A DNA stretch of 64,000 bases from Paragordius varius (taxonomy: Eukaryota > Animalia > Nematomorpha), in assembly GCA_964247055.1 (NCBI GenBank), contig OZ176057.1, positions 6,200,001 to 6,264,000 of the forward strand, read 5' to 3'. Shown here piece after piece: positions 12,674 to 59,364 of the stretch. Position 1 is the stretch's first letter, and each line of letters starts with the position of its first letter. A program made the position numbers and the translations under genes. The notes beneath the pieces were generated by a model that was not told where the DNA came from, did no database searches, and saw only the letters and a program-made list of their open reading frames with translations.

Positions 12674-15086
12674 TCAAATCTCTTCTTTACACAATTGCAT
12701 TTGGAATTTCTAATATTTTTAGTAAAATAATAAAAATGATATGATACCAAAACCATTTCCGAATCGAAATTAATTACAATTACATAAATATAATAAATAA
12801 ATATTGTCGTTTTATTATATACCATCTTTTCAGTTAAAATGCAACTTTTTCAACACTATTTATGTTGTTTTACATGAAAAATGTTTGAAAATATGTTCTT
12901 TTGACTGAAAAATGGTGTATTAAGAATTTATTCATAATCGAAATTCGTCCTCAATAATGTTAACTTCTAACTATTTTATAATTTAAATTATTTTAATATA
13001 TTTTTATGTATTAAACATATTTTTGAAAAAAATAAAATTCAAAATATCTAATTAAATAAATACCATCAATTGACATGCCAAATCTTGCAAGTTAGTTTCA
13101 GCCCTTATCCTTTTTTGTACATCGTAGAGCTAATACGTTAAAAGTTATAGTAAAAATTGGAATATATAGATAAAACGAAATAACTATACAATTTTTATTC
13201 AAAAGGCATCCTCTTATCTATACAGATTAAGGAATTTATATTATAACTCTATTCGCAGTTAGGCTTCAAAAAATCAAGGAATAATAAAGTAACTGGTTAT
13301 CTTTCATTTAGTAAAAAATATGATATCATCAAATATAATGATGATTTTTACTGTAAAAATATTCTTTTTTTAAAAAAATCTAAATGAATTTTTTCACTTC
13401 ATTTATAGTAACTAAGGGGACATAGTTGTGTTCATCCAGTAAAAGTTTTGTCCTTTGACCATTTCTACGGAGTGCGTGAGTTACTTGTTTAGACTCGGCA
13501 CAGATTTCAAGCTCCTCGTAATCAAAATTAAAAGTTTGACTACACTGAAATATATTTATGAATATATAAATATTTAATATAATGGTAAAATTAAAAATAT
13601 ACGGACAAAACGTAAAAATATAAAGGCAATTATTTTTATCTAAAAGACAATCCTAATTTTTTAAACTTTTTTTCTTATATAGGCTATTTAATCCGAACTC
13701 TTAAAGTGTAGAATCAATTGTGTTAGTAATATATGTCTCTATTTCACACTGTGCCATTTTTTTATATAAAAAAACAAGATTCAAAAAGTATGGTTGTCTT
13801 TTAGAAAAAAAATTTGTTTTTATATTTATACGTTTTTCCGTCTTTCAGTTATTACTATATAAATATATATATAAACTGTGGAAAAGAAGATGGTCATTTC
13901 GATCTAACAAAAATTTTTTTTTCATATAGCTTATTACCAGCAAATTCATCCGCAAAAATTATTATTTGTTGACAACCTAGTTTTTGAAATATTGAGAGAA
14001 AAGAAATCGGCCAAAAAGTGAAAAATAAGGATAATTCAAAAAATAATGATAAAATTTGAAATATTATGGTTTAATATCATTTTAGGAGATTTAATATTAA
14101 ACAGCCTAAAATTATATAGTGGGTTTCTATAAAATTTAAGCTCAAAAGATGGCGTTTTCCTTTTATTACACTCAAAAGATATAAAAAAATTTAATGAAAC
14201 TATATTAAAATAATTTTTTTAAATATTTACTACCTAAACTCACTATTAAAATCTTAATTTGATATTTTATTCAGTAAAAAAACTTCTATAATAAATAAAA
14301 CCAAAATATTGTTTTTTATTTTTGCATTTTTTGTCATCTGGTTTATAAGTGTATAAAAAATTTATACTGTTTTATTTTGGATTACATTAGTAGGAATATT
14401 TAGTATATAATTTATGCAAAATAGGATTAAAAAGTAGTGGAATATGAACCATCAATCCTTACGAATTCCTGTAAAAGTCTGTTTTATGACAAACTTATAT
14501 TTGTATTGGGATTTGTTCGAATTTTTTGTTGATATTCCACTAATTTTATATCCAATTTTGCATAAATTATATACTTAAAATTCGTACTCATGTAAGATTC
14601 CAAAATAAAACAGTATAAATTTTTTATACACTCAACCAGATGACAAAAAAATCTAAAATAAAAAACAATATTTTTTGGTTTAATTTTGATATAGAAAAAT
14701 AAATAATGAATGTTTAGATTTTAATAGTTAGTTTAGGTAGTGAATAATTAAACAAATTATTTTAATTTCATTAATTTTTTTGTCATTTGAGTGTGATAAA
14801 AGGAAGAAGCCATCTTTTGAGCTTATATTTTATAGAAACCCTAACTATATGATTTTAGGCTGTTTATATATTGAAAATATCTCCTAAAATGATAATAAAC
14901 CATAATATTTTAAATTTTATCATTATTTGAATAATCCTTAATTATTCTTATTTTTATATTTTTTGGCCTATTTCGCTTTTCTCTCAATTCAAAAACTAGT
15001 TTGTCAACAAATAATAATTTTTGCGGCATATGAATTCGCTGGTCATAAGCTATCTCATTTTTTTTGTTAAATTTTTTTTGCACACA

Positions 15087-15139
<53 letters not shown>

Positions 15140-18100
15140 AAAAATTAGGATAAAATACAGCTAAAGGGTATTTTAACTGTATAAAACAAATGGAATTTTT
15201 TAATTTAGACATATTGGTGAAATAAGTAAAATTTGAATTACACAACAGACAAAACTTAAAAACATAAATACATATATTTTTTTAAAAATGTTGACCGCCG
15301 TACTTTTTATATCATTTCTAACTTTTTTCATAAATTGCAAAGCATGAATAATGAGATTTAAATTAATAACTTTATTTGTAGTTATATATTTTAAAATTGT
15401 AATTATATAATATAAGAATAAATTAATCTTTAAGAAATTTCGGTGGTCTCTCATGAAGAGATTGAGTTCTTACTATTTGACTGTATAATTCGAATTTTGA
15501 ATGTACGTTTTATGTAAGGATTTCATGGGGAAAAATATTATATTTGAGTTTTGTAATTAATTTTTAAGTGTTAATACATTCTATTTTAAGGTGAATACGG
15601 CTTTTATGCTTAAAAGCTAAACGCTTATTTTTACGTGTGGATTCGGATAAATAAAGTGTGGTATAATACTATCAAATTATACTTTATGTTTAAAGCAAAC
15701 CTATTTGTGAATATTAAATTAATCTGTTTAAATGTTTGGATCATTAAAAAATTTGGCCTTGAAATTGATCGATTTTATGCATTAAAACATAAAACTGCAA
15801 ATTTTTTTATTACCCATATTTTTACAAACGAATTCTAAAATGCGTAATTTAATTGACAGAGAGCTTGTTTAATTAGTAAATTTTAACAAATTTACAGAAA
15901 AAGTTTAAATCAAGTTTAGCCGAGTATAATATAAGACAAGGAATAACTAATTAGTTTACGTTTTTTAGACCCAATCTTAAGTTTGAGAACCCAAATGTAC
16001 AAGCGATAAAGCCTTCGGCATCCCCGGCTTTTCTTAAGTTTCCATACAGTGCACAAGTCTATACAATACAAAAGAATAAGATTTATATGCAAATAAACAA
16101 TTAACCCTCACGAAATATTCTAAGTTGTAAAATTTAAACTGTATAATATGATTTACAAAATGGAAGATGGATTTGTTAAATGTTGCAATTCTTTAATAAA
16201 TAGATTTATGTTTTAAAGAGTTTGCAATTACATATTTATAAATATAATTTTACCAAGTTTAAAATTATATCGCTAGGGACACGTTTCGAAGTCCCTTATT
16301 TAAAAAATTATTTTTCATAATAGAAATATAAAATTGATAATTTTCTAAATATTATTAAAAATATATATATATATATATATATAATGCGTCCGAGATGGTT
16401 GACATAAAATTACCTCTATTTTTACAAAATATTAATAAAGTAAAAAAAAATTCAAAAAATAAAATTACATGCCACATATTTCCAACGCATTCCTCGTTCC
16501 CGTGATGGCACTTGAAATTGTATCGATCGGTTGAGTTATCGTAAGTTTCCTTAAAGAGCAAATAATATAAAAAAAGATGTCTAATTTTAGAATGAAATTA
16601 TATACAGAAGACAAAACGTAAGGACAAATTTTTTTTCTAAAAGACAAAAATTGTGAAATATGTAATTGATTATACATCTCTATCTCATGAATTTTAAAGA
16701 ATTATTATATCTAATAAAATACTAAAATATTTTTAAAAAATAATGTATGTCTTTATATTTTTCCGCTTTTTCCGTATTTCAATTTTTACTGTAAAAAAAT
16801 TATTTTTACATTAAATATTAGGTTAAACAAAACCCATATTTGTTTGATTTCTAATTTTGCTTATATAAATTACCTAATTCAATTGTGACAAATGTAATTG
16901 ATAAGTTACCAACATACATCTCTATCTCTGAATTTCATAGAATTATTATATCTAATAAAATTAAAATCTTTTCTAGAAAATAATGTTTGTCTTTATATTT
17001 TTCCGTTTTTTCCGTATTGCCATTTTTACTGTAAAAAAATTATTTTGACATTAATTATTAAGAATAAAAAAATTACTGAAGATTTCCCATAAGGCCAAAA
17101 TCGGAAGGATATGAGTTTGCGTATCTCTTCAGTTTCATTCCTGAGTTTTTGAATAAATGGCCACACCTATAAAAATTTTATTAGTATTAAAGTATTTTAG
17201 CTAAAATTATTCACTAAATTACACTAAAAATTTAAATTTTACGGACAAAATGTAAACATATAAAAAACAAATTTTTTTTAAAAAGACAACCATACTTTTT
17301 ATTATTCTATAAAATACATTTAAATACAATCGTATAACACATAATTGATTGTGTTAGCAATTTACATTTCTATATTATACTTTGTAGTTTATAACAATGA
17401 GTTATATTTAGAAAAATTAAGTTTCAAAGTATGGTTATCTTTTAGAAAAAAATATTTGTCTTAATTTACGTTTTGTCCGTATTATATCAGTTTTTACATT
17501 CGGAATTAGAATACATAGTTAACAGAGTTTAAATATAGAATAATTTTTTGCAAATGGAAACTCTTTGTGTGAAACATGTATTTAGAACAGGGGAATTTTA
17601 AAAATTGGAAATAAAGGATAATATTAAATTATATTTTATAGTTGATATTTAACTTTTTACTGAGTATATAATATCTATTTTTTGATTATTGTATTTAGAT
17701 TGAATTACAATTATATGTTGTTAACATATTAATTATCATATAAAGTGCTTTACAATTTTCAAAATTAAAGTAAACATTATAAAATCATTTTGATTGCCGG
17801 TATAACAAGGGAATATTTGAGTGTGTTCTATCTCTGATCTCTTTTTGCAAAACCCAAAAGAGATTAGGGGAATTAAAATATGTTTATTTGTAAAACTTAT
17901 TACAGTCATGTCTATATAGAATTGTCAGAAATTCGTATTTAAATGATTATAATTTTTTTTTAATTGTTTTGATGTTTGATATGTCAACTTTCAACATGCG
18001 CATTTTTAAGCCTTAAAATAATAGTAGCCTATTTATTGTAAGAATTTTTAATTTATAATTAAAAGATATTGCAAAATATTATTCTTGATGCACAACATGC

Positions 18101-21040
18101 GCATATTGTAATTTTTATCTTTTGTAAAATATTAATTATAAAATTTTATTAATAAAGTTTAAACACACATAACCAAAATATAATTTAAAAGATAAAAATA
18201 TTTATTGATTATAATATTTAAATAAATTTATAATTGTTTTCATTTTCTAGGGGTTTTCTTTGCATACATTCCAACAAAATATGTGAAGAAAAATTATAAT
18301 AATTTTTTAGATTTTTTTCCCTTCTCTCTTCGCAAAGTCTTGCAATTTTATTATGTTGCTCTAGAGGGGTACTACACCGGGGTTTTTTATCATATTGATG
18401 TTTAATCTCATGAAAAAAACATTCAATGGGATTCAGTTGTGGCGAATATGGAGGTAAATAAACTATTTTATTCCTTAGCTCACCTAACACCGCGGCTTTG
18501 TGAATAGGTGCATTATCGCAAACTATTATTGAACTTTCAGGAATTCTTGTTAAACATTCCGTCAAAAAAATTCGAAAATCATCGCCTCTAAAGGCGCCTT
18601 CTTTTGTTCTGTAATTAATAACTCCCTGACAACCAATCATACATATCAATGAAACATTTTTTCCTAAAATAAATTCAAATTTTACCTTTGTTAAATCCCT
18701 CTACAATAGGAGATTTACCCTTTGGAGCTCTACCCCATATATTTTTAAGTTTCAAACTGAAGCCTGACTCATCAATAAAAAAAACTTTTTCCTGTGGAAT
18801 ATCTTTCACCAATCTGGCATAATTATAACGCTTTTCTATATTCTCTGGGGTGTTTCGTTCCCGAGGTTGTAAAATACACCTCTTTCGAGTAATTTCTGAA
18901 TCCGAGAGAATTTTGTAAATAGTTGTTCTGCATACTTTAATATGGTCTGGTATTTGTTTCATTATTTCATCGATTGTTAATTCACAATCATTGTTTATTA
19001 ATCTTTTGACAGCATCTATTATTTCTGGATTTCTGAATTTGTTACGCCGACCAGATTTATTTCTATCAGTAGAATTCCCAAGAATTATTTTTCTTCTTAA
19101 TATATTTATAGATGTTAAGGACATATCAAAATAATCCAAAAAATAATTTGAGGGTTTTTCCAAATTTTTGGGATCAAAAAATAATTTTTTAGCTCTATCT
19201 ATTTTTTCCTTATTCCAAAAATTATGTTCTAAAATTTAAAAATATTAATACTTTTATGTTTTATTTTTTCACGAGATAATTCATTTTCATTCAATGGAAC
19301 ATCCAAATCAGATACTACGAATTGTTATTTTTAAATACTTGAAGACTCTTCACTTGTATCCGATTCAAAAGTATAAACTGAGGGAGCTATGTTTTCCTTT
19401 AATATTGGATTTTGTTCTCAATTTTTATTTTTTAATATAAACCTTCAAGTACACTAGCTGCCGAGCAAAGAAGAAATAATGGGTTATCGTTGATATTCAT
19501 AATTTTTTAAAATAACTCTAGATTTATGATTTATTTCTTTATATATATAGAGATTAAATGGACATCTGCTTGGGTTTTCTTATATATTTTAAGTGCATGT
19601 TAAAAACCCCTAGAAAATGAAAACATATATTAAACTTGGTTATCATAAATTACATGAGCATGTTGTAGATAAAATGTTCAAGAATAATATTTTGCAACAT
19701 CTTTTAATTATAAATTAAAAATTCTTACACTAAATAGGCTATTATTATTTTAAGGCTTAAAAATGCGCATGTTGAAAGTTGACATATCAAACATCAAAAC
19801 AATTAAAAAAAAATTATAATCATTTAAATAAAAATTTCTGACAATTCTATATAGACATGACTGTATAACATCTATAATTTTTATGTTTATCAATCTATAT
19901 TTGTAATTAGTGGTTAAATTGTGAGACATATTTGAATTGAAAATCAATAGATATTCTTTAAATTCTAAAATTAATAATATTGGACAACAGTTTTGTCCTT
20001 TATTAACTTTGGATGTTATACAGTAGCGTATTGAGTAAAACAATATTAGTCCATAGAAGAATAAAAAAATGTTTTTTTACAAAAACAAGCCTACTTGTAT
20101 ATTCACATAACTATAATAATATTCCCTTGTTTTTTTTTAAAAAAAACTTAATTTTATTCTATTATGGGCTAATAATGTTTTATCTGTATAAAATCACATT
20201 TCAATTTCAGTTAAATATCAGCAATATACAATTTAGATTGTTAAATATCCTAGAAATATTTTAAATTTCCCACATTTTAAAGTTCCATAAACGAAATTCG
20301 ATGAAAACAAAACTTTAAAATATTTTTAAAAGACATAATTTTTATTATTTTTCCCATATAATTTATCTTACAAATGTAAAATATATAGAGTAGCGTATGG
20401 CATAAAACATTTTTAGTTAATAAAAGAATAAAAAAATGTTTTTTAAAATAACAACATTCTTTCATTAGGGACTAATTTGTTTTATATCATACGCCACTGC
20501 AAATTAATGTGCTACCAATTTACATTTTTATTTCTACTTTGCAATTTAAAATAATGAGTGCAGATAACAAACAATATTTTAAAAATGTACAATGCTTATT
20601 TAAGTAAAGGTGATGTCTTTATGTATTTTACGTTTTGTCTATGGTATATTTTTAATTTTATAGTCAAAAATATTGCTATATATTCTAATTTATACCTGTG
20701 TCACTATAAGCCTTCTACTGTCCGGACATAGAGATTCATAATAAATGTCTAAAATAATTGGGGTTGTATATTCAATTTTTGCATCAGAGCTACTTTCATC
20801 GGCCTTTACACCAGAAGATTTTAAGGAACTTTCGTTAAATGTTTGCTTTTTCGTTTCAGTTTTAACTGTAAAATTCGTTTTAGCTGGTGTTTTTATCTTG
20901 GTATTATTAATGGTTTCTGATGAAGCAATATTAGATATTCTTTTATGCTGACCTGCGGATATATTTTCTTTGGGGATTAAAGAGTTATTTTGGCCCGCGA
21001 CTAATGTTAAACCAACAAACAAAGTTATCAAAATTATCAT
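12674..21040 (-). CDS. GILT: GILT-like (gamma-interferon-inducible lysosomal thiol reductase) protein (exons 21040-20696, 17166-17077, 16549-16469, 16058-15960, 13544-13398, 13129-13064, 12709-12674)
   Basis: Signal peptide MIILITLFVGLTLVAG, active site YYESLCPDS (CXXS), then PYGK, FKCHHGNEECVGN, and YVPLVTINE. Six phase-0 GT-AG introns give a stop-free ORF. Confidence 0.92.
13580..13857. mobile_element. MITE family C copy in GILT intron 4
   Basis: Both arms recognisable. Confidence 0.8.
13874..15089. mobile_element. ~1.2-kb hairpin (foldback/MITE) element with CACTGTG-type ends next to (TA)n, in GILT intron 4
   Basis: The two arms (~550 bp each) are reverse complements; CACAGTG end followed by a long (TA)n tract. 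Confidence 0.88.
15090..15137. repeat. (TA)n microsatellite; others at ~8585-8610, 16360-16383, 23506-23533 and 62250-62295
   Basis: Read directly. Confidence 0.95.
16600..17030. mobile_element. MITE family C remnant with a tandemly duplicated right half, GILT intron 2
   Basis: tatacatctctatctc..GAATT...GTCTTTATATTTTTCCG..TTTTTACTGTA occurs at ~16670-16790 and ~16915-17030. Confidence 0.7.
17222..17497. mobile_element. MITE family C copy in GILT intron 1
   Basis: Both arms recognisable. Confidence 0.82.
17903..19863 (-). mobile_element. IS630-Tc1-mariner DNA transposon, family A, apparently intact, in GILT intron 1
   Basis: TA duplication (17901-02, 19864-65). Ends are CAGTCATGTCTATATAGAATTGTCAGAAATT and its reverse complement. 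Long imperfect TIRs of ~260-350 bp. Encodes a transposase. Confidence 0.95.
18218..19500 (-). CDS. DD30E IS630/Tc1-like transposase, 395 aa after removing four micro-introns (exons 19500-19443, 19416-19339, 19314-19252, 19228-18686, 18663-18218)
   Basis: Motifs FIDESGF, VCDNAPIH, LPPYSPQLNPIECFF and an HTH-like region (TIDEI...VCRTTIYKIL). Exons of 58+78+63+543+446 = 1188 nt give a stop-free ORF. The introns (26, 24, 23, 22 nt) are all GT-AG and phase 1. Confidence 0.85.
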
Positions 21041-53189: not shown

Positions 53190-54968
53190 AAGTCTTCACA
53201 AGTATTTGTCAAATTATATTTGACAGATAAAACGGCCTTAAAGTTTCAACATTTAAATTTGATTTTTCCGATGGCCACACCTGATTTACTGTGGAAAAAA
53301 CGCGATCAGTAGCAGCGTTGGTTCCAGGTAAATATAATGCGAATTCCACAATTTTTAAAATATTATTGTTTGTAATATAGTTGGCTTCAAAATGATAAAA
53401 TATTTCCAACCATTTCTTTTTTACTGTATATTTTCTTTTGTCCATAATTTAAGTTTTTTATTATTAATATATCTTTTAACTTATGATACTTCAGAAAAAA
53501 GATCATTTTCTGAAAGATTACCTTTTGATAAATTTTGGGAGCAGATATAATCAAATCATTTTTGAACATCGCACCAATTAAATTCTGATTTTAATGTTAT
53601 CCAATGAAAATGATCAATTTCAATGAATTGGGTCGTCCAGTCTTCCAAATAATCTTTACAGTTTGTATAAAACATTTTTATATAGTACAGGATATCTTGG
53701 CGATTTATTAAGCCTTGTTTTTCTAAATTATTTATTATATTGCGGATGTTAATAGTATAAAATTATTTTCTAACCGTTCTTGACATTGGAATTTTAGGTT
53801 ACTAACTTCATTGGCTACTTCGATTGCCGAAATTTTGTCACCTTCTATAAATTTAATAACATTTTGAAAGAGAGAAGCTTGATTATGTAAGCATTCTAAC
53901 CATATTTTTGAACAATCACTTTCAAAAAACTTTTTTAAAGTTGTATGACATTTGTCCTATGGTAATAAAAAAGATTTTAAAGGATCATAATTTTTAAAAT
54001 TCTTTCGATAGCTGGCATAAAAGCTAACCAACGAGTTTTACAATATCCAAGCATTTTTTGATATTAAACTTCTGCATTTTCACAGAATTCTTTAAGCGAT
54101 TCCTACTGTGTATATTAAAAAATAGGAATATATTTTAACAACTACATTTTCCACATCTAGGGGTAACAAATCAGTAGCTGTTTGAATAGCGTTGTGTAAA
54201 TGCGTTGCACACCCAACGCCAATAATGTTTTGACTAAGATTATCTGTTAATTTATGAAAAATATTTTTTTGTTCCTCTCCTTGCTTTTCCACCAAAGTTC
54301 ATATTGGTGTTGTCAGCGCAATATACGATAATTTTGTATTTTAAATTATTTTTTTGCATTATTGAAGTAAATATTATTTCGGAATTTTCACCGGGTAGGG
54401 AAATTAAATCTAAAATTTTAATTTTTACTCCGGTTTCTGAATCAAAATATCTCATCAAAGTGGGAAATAATTTTGTTTCATGGTGATTTGATGCATCAGA
54501 GTATAGCGATATGGAATTAATTTTCAGCAAATCTTTTTGTATTTCAGAAAATATATGTGGCGAAAGGACATTGCACACAATGGCTTCAGCCTTTGTACGG
54601 GCACATGTAAATTTTTTATGGAATAACGTGCGAATAACTTGTGAGGTACAGTCCATAGATCTAAAGGAATTATTGTGATTAACGGCGTGAAAAGATAACA
54701 CGCACTCAGCTAGTGCCAAATTCTTTTTTTCCTCTCCAAAAGCGGTTTTTCGAAAAAAATCGCTCATTTTGTAAGATGATGCCGCCATATCTAAACATTT
54801 TTTATGTTTCTGTGTTTCCATATGCTTTGTAATATCATGCTTGCCGCCATGTGCCAGGGTGAATTCCCCCTCGCATATAAGACATTTAACAGATGTTCAT
54901 TCTTCGTTTTTTTGATAAAAGGAAAATCTTTCATTAATTCATCGTTGAATTTACAACCTCTTTTTGTG
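53190..54968 (-). pseudogene. hAT transposase pseudogene (frameshifted)
   Basis: Zinc-finger remnant C..C...HGGKHDITKH..T.KH, LYSDASNH, CADNTNMNFGG, GCATH (CxxH), and the C-terminal dimerisation motif LPGTNAATDRVFS, spread over several frames. Confidence 0.88.
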
Positions 54969-55255: not shown

Positions 55256-56407
55256 AATGACAGTAGTAGTAGGAAGTATAGTGTATAATCACATGATATA
55301 AATTCGAAAAAATAAATATTTTTAATTTAAAATAAAAAATTTTAATTTAAAATTGAATAGATTTTAAAGATATTTAATGATAAAAAATTTAAACGGACAA
55401 AAAAAATTTATTTGTATTAAAAAAAATTTTTTTTTATATAATTGTGAAAAAGCGGGACATTTAAAAACGTAGCAGGAAGCGGGACAAAGTGTGAAAAAGC
55501 GGGACTGTCCCGCCAAAAGCGGGACGTCTGGTCACCTTATATATACATTTAACGTTCTAAATAACTTGTTCGATTTTCATATTTTTATAAAGTAACATAA
55601 AGGCAACACATATAAATATATTATTAGGTATAGCGTTCTAAATAATTTGTTCGATTGTTGCATTTTTATATTCACACAAAAGTTACATCGTTTAAACATA
55701 TTGAAATGTTATATGCTGTAACGTTCTAAATTATTTGTTCGATTGTCACATTTATATATATTAACGCAAAACACATCATCTATATATATTAAAAAAATGC
55801 TATAATTGCTGTTTGATACCCTTATGCGAATTTTTGGGGGAATAACAATGTCTTTATTCAAAAAACATATTTTAAAGTTGGAGGAAAAACTGAACAGAAG
55901 TTAACATTGACAATAATATATTCACAACAACGGAATTAACTAAAAGCGTATTTTTGTATGTGGCTTAGTTAGAATTATAGAGATATATTTTTTAAATAAT
56001 TACACCCAATCAAACACAACTCAAATGAACTTACTGACAGCTAAAAACAATAGTAATCATAAAGCCTGGAAAATTGATCAAGCAATATAATACAATCAAA
56101 CTGGTCAGGTAACTAAAAATTTAAAATTTGAATAATTTATAGGCTTTAATTTAAATAAAATTTTATCTGTTTATATAAAATTCATTAGCCAATGCGATAT
56201 ACATTTTTGCATTTTGCAATAAAAATAGCCATATTAATTATCTATCACAGATAAAGCAAAGTAAAACCATACAAGTACAATGAAAAAATAATGACGTTTG
56301 AAATACAAAACAATTACAACACATCAATCATTTTATAAAAATAAAAACCTTATTTTCAAAATGTAAAACATTATCCAACAATCGTCTATAACATTCATTG
56401 TGAAATA

Positions 56408-59176
56408 CAGTCATGTAGACTTTATATTGTTAAAGATTTACTTTTTCGTTAATTGGGTATTAATATTTGGTAAAGAATATAAAAACAAGAGCAATATGGT
56501 ATTACCATATCACATTCTTTAAAAAAATTAAAAGAAGTGTGGGGGAAGGGCGTCAGAAATCTTTGGTAAAAAATGAAAATCTTTAATATTGAGGGGAATG
56601 GTAATATTTTTGTTAATTTTTTGCAAAATTTTATATATTAATTTTTTTGATAAAATTTTTATTTAACACCTAGATTCGAATGGGGTATTTAAATATACCT
56701 TAGACTAAATTTGAGTTAGGATTTTTTAATAACTAGTGAAAGAAACGGTCCCAATTTAAATTTATGCTTCTTTTCTAATAAAAATTATATATAAATATGC
56801 CAAAATATTATAAAATTTTGTTTTGAAAAAAAAGTTCCATGTCAAACAACTTCGACGCCATTTTTATTTTACAAAATGTTTGCAAAATGTCGTGTTCATT
56901 TAGTGTTAAGGGTAAAATTAAAGATAATTTTTTATTTAAATCACATCTAACCTTGATAGAAATAGAAAAAGCGATTTATTTTGTATTCTTTTTCAATTTT
57001 ACCATTGCACACATGTCACATTAAATTTTTACCTTTTGTTTTAGCTTAAAAATGAATGTGTTGTATCCAAGTGTTAAACAAAACTAACTTAAATATAGAT
57101 TTTATTAAAAAAATATTTATTATAATTTTTTTAATAGGATATCACAATAATCAAACAAACATACAACGGATAAATAATGAATTGTGTGTATATATAAGGG
57201 AAAACATAGGAAATGAATATGGATTATATAGCGTTTATAAAAAAATATTATCGAACTGAATGCGTTTCATCCTAAAATGCTCTATTTTGGGAAATTTAAA
57301 ATTCAATCATATATATACCAGTTTACCACTATTTAACCCTATTGAATGTTTTTTTCTATAATAATTGTTATAAAAAAAGCAAGATATATCTGGAAATTAT
57401 TTTTATATCGTACTGTGCGATCAAAAAAAAAATAAATCGTCTCTGATACTTACAATAAATGATGTTTAAAATTGTTTTCATTTTTCAACCTTAGTTTTTT
57501 TAAAGCAACATCAATTAAAACTCTTTTTGAAAAATCATAATAATTTTGAAGAGATTTTGTTTTTCTTTCGTCGCACAATCTTTTGATTCTGCAATATTGT
57601 TCCCCGAATGTAGTCCATCTTGGTTTTTTTTTATAATAAAATTTTAATTCGTGAAAAAAACATTCAATAGGATTGAGTTAGGGGCGATTAAGGTGGTAAA
57701 TATATAAGCTTGTTCCTTAAATTACCCAAAATAGAACATTTATGTATGGGTGCGTTGTCGCAAATGACAAACGCATCTTGTGGTAACATGGCCAAAGACT
57801 CCTCCAAAAATGGCTTAAAATTCTCGCCATTGAACGCTCCCTGTTTGATGCTGTAATTAACAACACCCTGTATTCCAATCATACACAACAAAGAGACGTT
57901 TTTACCTAAAATAAAATAAAGATATACCTTTATTGAAGCCCTTTACGATAGGTGCCTGTCCTGACGGTGCCCGGCCAAATATATTTTTTGCTATCAAGGA
58001 AAACCCCAACTCATCTAAATAATAGATTTCGTCCAAGGGTATACCGTTCACAAGACAGGCATACTCAAATCGTTTTTGAATTACCAACGAGGAATTGCGC
58101 TGTTGAGGTTCCATAATACACCTTTTGCGCGTGTATTTAAATATTTTATATAAGGTTTTTTTGGATATTTTGGATTCTGTGGGTAATTTTATTGAGAATC
58201 TCATCGACAGTCAATTCACAATCACTATCGAGGATTGTTTTGACCTGCCCGACTAGACCTTCATTGCATTTCGTTTTCCTACCCTTTTTCAATGGCTCTT
58301 TCTCTCTATTCCCAGAGTCATGCTTCGTCTCATAGCATTTATGGAACTTATAGACATGTCTAAATCATCTACAAAATGACGATACGATAATTCGTGATTT
58401 CTGGGATTCCCGAAAATTTTATAGGCCTTAGACTTTTTTTCATCTAACCAAAAATTATATTCTAAAATTAACAAAAACGGTTTTCCTTTTTCCTCTACCG
58501 TTTAATGAAGTTGTCATATTTTCATTCCCGATCTCATTAACACCTAAATTCTAAATGAAAAAAAAAACCATCGTTGCCAGGGACAAAATTTTGTATGGGT
58601 CTTATATTTTCGTCAACATAATCTGAATCTAACATTATAAAGGCAAAAAAAACCATCAAGGACACCAGGACAAGTGTCTACTATCAATTCATTCCCGCCA
58701 ATCTCATTAACACCTAAATTCTAAATGAAAAAAAAACCATCGTTGCCAGGAACAAAATTTTGTGTGGGTCTTATATTTTCGTCTACATAATCTGAATCTA
58801 ACATTATAAAGGAAAAAAATACCCGCAATACCAGGGTTACATCCTAACGAAATTGGATCAAATTGATTTAATATAGCATCTATCGTAAAAATCCCTTTTA
58901 TCGTTCCCATATCAAAACAAAAAAAAATTATAATTGAGATAAAAATTACGATTTTCCTAATTCTTTTATACAATAATTTTAAGTGAAGGGTTAGTAGTTG
59001 GTGTATTTTCATTTTTTACCAAAGATTTCCGACGCCTTTCCACTTCATTTTTTACTTTATTAAAGAATATGATATGGTAATACCATATTGCTCTTGTTTT
59101 TATATTCTTTACCAAATATTAATACCCAATTAACGAAAAGAGGTAAATCTTTAACAATATAAAGTCTACATGAATG
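56408..59176 (-). mobile_element. IS630-Tc1-mariner DNA transposon, family B, degenerate, inserted into a tandem-array unit
   Basis: ~170-bp TIRs starting CAGTCATGTAGACTTTATATTGTTAAAGATTTAC. TA duplication, confirmed against the empty site in a sister unit (atcgtaaaaTAtagtggtttt near 47250). Confidence 0.92.
57450..58880 (-). pseudogene. Family B transposase pseudogene with micro-introns and several frameshifts
   Basis: YLDELGF, ICDNAPIH, LPP..., NPIECFF remnants. Frameshifts near 58310, 58175 and 57680, plus an in-frame stop after LPP. 22-nt intron at 57906-57927. Confidence 0.88.
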
Positions 59177-59364
59177 TATACTGGTTTTAGAATTACTCAC
59201 TTAATTTTAATTGGATTAGCATCATATATAAAATTGAACTGATTAATGGAATTATGTAGCGTGCTGTCAAAATTTTTCAAATACAAATTATTATTAAGTG
59301 TAAAATCAAAAAAATAAACTTGTCAGTCGTTTTATCAATGAATTAATAACATTAAACCACACAT

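Follow-up and report, generated by a model that had tools for sequence, protein, structure and literature searches.

A Tc1-type transposon of the hairworm Paragordius varius whose transposase gene appears to be divided by four introns of 22–26 nucleotides

Can a transposase gene that an open reading frame (ORF) listing presents as two broken pieces nevertheless be intact? The question is raised by a transposon, designated here E1, that lies in a stretch of 64,000 nucleotides of the nematomorph Paragordius varius (contig OZ176057.1, positions 6,200,001 to 6,264,000); we refer to this whole stretch as the window, and all coordinates below are counted from its first base. The ORF listing of the E1 interior contains two large broken pieces, and an earlier interpretation made from the DNA letters without database searches (the sequence-only reading) proposed that they are parts of a single transposase gene split by four ultrashort introns. 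Having compared E1 with its homologues, with a second element in the same window and with contigs from public sequencing runs, we consider it likely that E1 is an autonomous transposon with a five-exon transposase gene, and that its four GT-AG introns, of 22–26 nt each, are spliced by the host.

E1 (17901-19865, minus strand, 1965 bp) is a complete DNA transposon of the Tc1/mariner type. Its terminal inverted repeats are 188 nt each, the right-hand copy at 17901-18088, on the 3′ side of the gene, being 97% complementary to the left-hand copy at 19678-19865, on the 5′ side. Both ends were read; each starts with CAGTCATG and each has a TA immediately outside it as the target-site duplication, an arrangement that is a hallmark of the Tc1/mariner superfamily. 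The 3′ piece of the gene is a DDE_3 endonuclease domain (Pfam E=2.7e-17, 63 bits against a cutoff of 28.6), and its acidic triad, formed by the D of FIDESGF, the D of CDNAPIH and the E of NPIE, lines up with the triad of homologues. The spacing between the second catalytic D and the E is 30 residues in E1 (window positions 18414-18515) and 34 in the aligned homologues, with the four residues by which E1 is short falling in the loop that follows ..LGELRNK. The 5′ piece gives weak helix-turn-helix matches, including one to HTH_Tnp_Tc3_2 at 18 bits, which is under the Pfam cutoff of 31.5.

There is also a perfect inner inverted repeat of 23 nt (18235-18257 and 19603-19625), one arm of which, at 18235-18257, extends over the final transposase codons (..ENENNYKF). 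Of all the DNA shared by E1 and the second element described below, this stretch is the most conserved, and by analogy with IR-DR elements it may be an inner transposase-binding site. By its TA target, its terminal repeats and its catalytic domain E1 is a Tc1-type transposon, on which its four predicted tiny introns and its small-exon N-terminus are a new variation.

The proposed gene reads on the minus strand from an ATG at 19500. Exon 1 (19443-19500, 58 nt), which is supported by its frame only, is followed by micro-intron 1 (19417-19442, 26 nt); then come exon 2 (19339-19416, 78 nt), which is acidic and serine-rich, micro-intron 2 (19315-19338, 24 nt), exon 3 (19252-19314, 63 nt) and micro-intron 3 (19229-19251, 23 nt), with the acceptor AATTTTAG. 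Exon 4 (18686-19228, 543 nt) carries the DNA-binding part and the first catalytic D (FFIDESGF); micro-intron 4 (18664-18685, 22 nt) lies inside the DDE domain; and exon 5 (18218-18663, 446 nt) holds the rest of the DDE_3 domain (CDNAPIH to NPIE) and the stop codon. The sequence-only reading had given the four segments as 26, 24, 23 and 22 nt long, all GT..AG and all in phase 1, that is, after the first base of a codon, and a script reproduced every one of these figures, including the GT and AG termini of all four. The AT-richness claimed for them is equally evident: the G+C content is 9–21% in each and 13.7% overall against 30.5% in the exons, and it resembles that of the non-coding parts of E1.

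Unspliced, the gene has abundant stops in every frame, among them the stop that the sequence-only reading had placed within 19338-19315, and which is indeed in the frame of the preceding exon. Removal of the four segments leaves a single frame of 1188 nt, running from the ATG at 19500 to a TAA at 18220-18218 and comprising 395 codons, and at intron 4 it restores the junction GFNK-G-KNVSLICMIG exactly as it had been written. The strength of the case differs along the gene: for introns 1–3 removal restores the frame only, whereas for intron 4 it also restores the fit to homologues.

This fit was examined through relatives of the exon 5 piece, 2702 of which were returned by an exhaustive search without profiles; many are transposases of 300–390 residues in a single frame, and the fit was scored among the best 150. 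Among these, 72 of the 75 homologues of at least 300 aa were matched by the exon 4 piece as well, and in the same order. For 31 homologues the alignments reach the ends of both pieces, and 28 of them project a gap of two residues between the pieces, one of the two being the split codon, such that removal of intron 4 produces a join that fits within one residue. The split codon, G/GA, supplies the G of the conserved KGxNxS motif, and the join recreates ..NKGKNVSL.., which may be compared with ..SKGKNISL.. in homologue P0004. The exon 4 piece itself aligns to the N-terminal 170–180 residues of full-length homologues (E down to 4e-19), beginning at their residue 3–11. No match to exon 5 was found at E<=1e-30 in the exhaustive search, and none exceeded 52% identity; the exon 4 ORF had no match in a collection of 5.8 billion protein clusters. 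The weak or missing matches in both searches indicate that the E1 family is absent from those collections.

Two short matches that start at the exon 5 boundary were considered as intron-bearing copies and rejected, as in one (L001) the frame is continuous and its start was called late, and the other (L002) is cut by the end of its contig. A pattern scan of metagenomes, in which 0–30 bases were allowed between the end of exon 4 and the start of exon 5, gave no match.

A second line of evidence comes from E2 (56405-59179, minus strand), an element of a related family that has the same TA followed by CAGTCATG at its end. E2 is decayed, its frame being broken by one stop and three or more frameshifts, and it shares 64% DNA identity with E1 over 1120 nt. 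At 57906-57927 (minus strand) it contains a 22-nt GT..AG segment that matches intron 4 of E1 in codon, phase and length; 17 of the 22 bases are identical, and the donor GTA and the acceptor TATTTTAG are common to both elements. The other segments of E2 likewise start with GT and finish with AG. The exons on either side of the 22-nt segment have been under selection, as seen in a codon comparison of E1 and E2 by the Nei-Gojobori method, in which the other frames served as a control for base composition. For exon 4 in the proposed frame the proportions of synonymous (pS) and non-synonymous (pN) differences are 0.69 and 0.32, with a pN/pS of 0.46; for exon 5 they are 0.73 and 0.25, with a pN/pS of 0.34; and in the four other frames pN/pS is about 1.0–1.6. 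Purifying selection on exons 4 and 5 indicates that, for as long as E1 and E2 have been diverging, both were translated, in frames offset by one base, and the 22 nt therefore had to leave the message during all of that time.

Further similarity lies at intron 3: here E1 and E2 are nearly identical in the acceptor and in the first codons (AATTTTAG/AA.ATAATTTTTGG; 14 bases of the exon), in surroundings that are 64% alike. The sequence-only reading had held that the element depends on micro-intron removal, and this agrees with what we find, since by its sequence the transposase is producible only with the segments taken out, and intron 4 and the intron 3 acceptor appear to have been conserved under selection. 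The putative introns are old within the transposon lineage, being common to a family that is 36% diverged in DNA. The predicted intron 4 is supported far beyond chance by these comparisons, and we regard its reality as highly probable.

The case for the upstream part of the gene begins with exon 4, which has no in-frame ATG ahead of its conserved part and has a stop just upstream, inside intron 3. Because it starts at the N-terminus of the homologues without an ATG of its own, an upstream exon with a start codon is required, and hence intron 3, which we consider a likely feature of the gene. Introns 1 and 2 cannot be aligned between E1 and E2. When the longest chain that starts with ATG and has no more than three GT..AG segments of 20–30 nt was sought by dynamic programming, for the N-terminal chain only, the outcome was precisely the solution of the sequence-only reading for introns 1–3.

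E2 also has an N-terminal chain (58462-58910, minus strand), which starts with an ATG at 58910, contains GT..AG segments of 25, 24, 25, 25 and 37 nt, all in phase 1, and stays in frame up to and into the body of the transposase. It has three exons of 60 nt, and a unit of ~170 nt that holds two 60-nt exons and two tiny introns forms a tandem duplication (58545-58830) across which the frame is still open. The small exons of E2 and exon 2 of E1 have a motif ENI(R/A)P in common, which is ENIRP in the 60-nt exons and ENIAP in exon 2. The like design of E2 supports introns 1 and 2 by analogy only, and we think it reasonably probable, with less assurance than for intron 3, that these two introns are real as well.

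Contigs of four public runs (X1, X2, X4 and X7), filed under at least four organism labels, were compared with E1. Copies that lack the segments, which would identify them as simple insertions, are not present among these contigs; all four segments are kept without gaps, and no deletion listed in the contigs lies at any of them. The presence of ungapped segments in four independent runs shows that they are not assembly errors. Intron 1 ends TTGAG in the window copy and TTCAG in the copies of all four runs (19419 C>G, plus strand). The near-identical copies that the sequence-only reading had suggested looking for elsewhere in the genome are suggested by X1, where the depth over E1 is ~20 times or more that of its flanks, although this depth is not a copy number. 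The X1 depth over the inverted ends is ~5–20 times that over the E1 interior, and one X1 contig links 18536 directly to 19370 and is an internal-deletion derivative of E1; together these observations suggest that the family has many copies, deleted and miniature forms among them. Among the near-identical copies there are three synonymous and eight non-synonymous differences, too few to judge selection. E1 is probably a young and recently active element in which the transposase gene is intact, and its copies across organism labels could represent related species, the same worm in different host samples, or horizontal spread.

In X1 the summed contig depth of the sequences that flank E1 is far above the ~50 of unique DNA: it reaches ~175,000 across 17127-17507, and parts of 19921-20555 have values as high as ~25,000. 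There are many rearranged joints in these stretches; they are very abundant short repeats resembling miniature inverted-repeat transposable elements, on both sides of E1. The unique flanks of E1 are covered in X1 only, and there with ~5–10% differences.

How else might these observations be explained? E1 could be a dead pseudogene, in which the segments are insertions that happen to be GT..AG and whose copies have been moved by the transposase of another element; the variation among near-identical copies does look neutral, and internally deleted derivatives exist. However, the 22-nt segment is older than the split between E1 and E2 and both of its flanks have been under strong purifying selection in different frames, no segment-free copy occurs in the four runs, and four of four breaks are GT..AG, in phase 1 and 22–26 nt long, unlike random indels; we regard a pseudogene as very unlikely. 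Translation of the 22-nt segment, with a +1 ribosomal frameshift within it joining the two frames, has in its favor that neither E1 nor E2 has a stop in the exon 5 frame across the 22 nt, but it would add ~7 residues inside the KGxNxS motif, where homologues have room for one. Moreover, the five differences between E1 and E2 in this segment alter the residues of three of the seven codons, while the GT and the TTTTAG are kept, and introns 1–3, one of them with an in-frame stop, would receive no account, so that we give frameshifting almost no credence. A different possibility concerns regulation: all of the introns may be real, with the splicing of at least one of them controlled by tissue or stage and limiting transposition, as for the third intron of the P element or for Tc1, whose RNA is mostly unspliced in wild-type worms, where RNA-binding proteins hold splicing back (PMC12632400). 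Retention of intron 4 in E1 would give ..GFNKGKI and then a stop, two codons in, and thus a truncated protein with the DNA-binding part only, which could act as a repressor; and because the small exons are multiples of three between phase-1 introns, skipping them would preserve the frame. Ordinary constitutive introns would nonetheless have the same features in a host in which tiny introns abound, and regulated splicing of E1 seems to us doubtful.

Several observations weigh against the five-exon model. A chain of at least 201 nt can be constructed at 3.2% of 3000 random places in the window, and introns 1–3 are thus not secured by the open frame alone, the N-terminal chain being suggestive and no proof; introns 1 and 2 and exons 1–3 depend on an open frame that can be mimicked in this way and on a short resemblance to E2. 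The E2 counterpart of the intron 3 donor is out of register in that decayed element, and one variant E1 copy in X4 (minor in X1) has AA in place of the AG of intron 3. The runs that contain E1 are of unknown kind by their records, and the four compared are DNA-like, with contigs that take in the inverted ends and keep the segments, and the RNA-labelled runs of organism A are without any words of E1. In addition, the host genes read in this window, a GILT-like gene and a reeler-domain gene, show no tiny intron. It is conceivable that only introns 3 and 4 are real, and that exons 1–2 and introns 1–2 are a chance chain with the true first exon or start elsewhere: besides the frequency with which random places permit an equal length, exons 1–3 have no homologue outside this genome, and DNA similarity to E2 begins only at 19292, inside exon 3. 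Against this stands the same design in E2, with its small exons, its 24–25-nt GT..AG segments all in phase 1 and its version of ENI(A/R)P, and we think a chance chain unlikely.

We retain the five-exon model as the preferred one. E1 would be an autonomous member of the Tc1/mariner superfamily that has recently been active in cut-and-paste transposition, and the splicing machinery of the host would remove four spliceosomal GT-AG introns from its pre-mRNA, yielding a transposase of 395 residues. Three small exons with the same start and end phase would contribute an acidic N-terminal extension of 66 residues, to be followed by a Tc1-like body of ~328 residues. We infer that introns 1 and 2 are real, that the segments are removed by RNA splicing and that the protein is active.

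The host introns read in the window are ~3.5 kb in the GILT-like gene and 0.58 kb in the reeler-domain gene. The sequence-only reading had offered as one option that the tiny introns are a trace of origin in a tiny-intron host; as stated this finds no support, and it presupposes that the present host is without such introns. The simplest reading is that the introns of E1 are of the resident host's own type, with no foreign origin. The window has a G+C content of 26.5% and is rich in DNA transposons, in agreement with the published genome of Gordionus montsenyensis (26.93% G+C and 63.8% repeats, mostly DNA transposons); introns are unmentioned in the published hairworm genome papers that we examined.

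E1 is located within the ~3.5-kb first intron of the GILT-like host gene and in the same orientation (window 15000-21040, minus strand). Exon 1 of that gene is at 21040-20694 (..YYESLCPDSRRLI..), and the exons after it lie at about 17166-17026 (..WPYGK) and 16561-16355 (..CHHGNEECVGN..). Elsewhere in the window, an ORF of 189 aa at 54252-54821 on the minus strand (..FHAVNHNNSFRSMDC..) presumably resembles part of a transposase-derived protein of the hAT/ZBED type.

If E1 is organized as we propose, there are consequences beyond this locus. Standard ORF and repeat tools would call the E1 family dead in spite of its probable intactness, and estimates of mobile-element activity here would be skewed; at the same time E1 offers a handy multi-copy test object for the splicing of 22–26-nt introns in this animal. 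A 22-nt intron in the catalytic domain that is common to two diverged transposon families suggests that tiny introns can persist for long periods in a mobile gene, and such introns could confine the element to hosts with the capacity to splice them. Since excision of introns shorter than 30 nt is known from few animal lineages, one may go on to speculate that the tiny introns are a lock that permits transposase only in splicing-capable hosts or cell types, and that the duplicating small exons could seed arrays of micro-exons and micro-introns in the host, though we judge this idea improbable.

Tc1 of Caenorhabditis elegans (DD34E) is one of the known systems that come nearest to E1. Like E1 it has a TA target, inverted ends and a DDE transposase, of ~330–340 residues, and its transposase gene has an intron near the minimum size of its host, a single one of 41 nt, the splicing of which is needed for translation (PMC12632400). 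The statement of the sequence-only reading that Tc1/IS630 transposases are mostly intron-poor thus needs a qualifier, as Tc1 itself has an intron that must be spliced. E1 differs from Tc1 in having four putative introns of 22–26 nt, one of which cuts the catalytic domain; in the three small exons that would add a 66-residue N-terminal extension that homologues lack; and in its 188-nt ends and a D-E spacing of 30, not 34. The Drosophila P element is likewise a DNA transposon whose transposase requires intron removal, and in which retention truncates the protein, as is predicted from the sequence of E1; it belongs to a different superfamily, however, and has introns of normal size. Tissue-specific retention of the P element third intron is proven, whereas for E1 it is hypothetical.

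Tiny introns as such have a different set of parallels. Among animals, introns of less than 30 nt have been published for two lineages only, in a report whose main text makes no mention of Nematomorpha (PMC13644364). The lineages are the myxobolid myxozoans and Dicyema japonicum, in which GT-AG introns with medians of 22–27 nt were accepted on the basis of conserved position between conserved exons, as is done here for E1 (PMC13644364). Their genomes are compact and nearly all of their introns are tiny, while the host of E1 is repeat-rich and has introns of 0.5–3.5 kb in the window; moreover, the tiny introns proposed here are in a mobile element. Related to E1 in protein sequence are the uninterrupted Tc1/IS630-like transposases from metagenomes and Logan assemblies (such as P0004, P0012 and P0042), which have 31–52% identity to E1, are collinear with it across the DNA-binding and DDE parts, and have the KGxNxS and NPIE motifs in common with it. 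Unlike E1, they consist of a single open frame, with no break at the position of intron 4 (checked in the DNA for L001) and no N-terminal extension.

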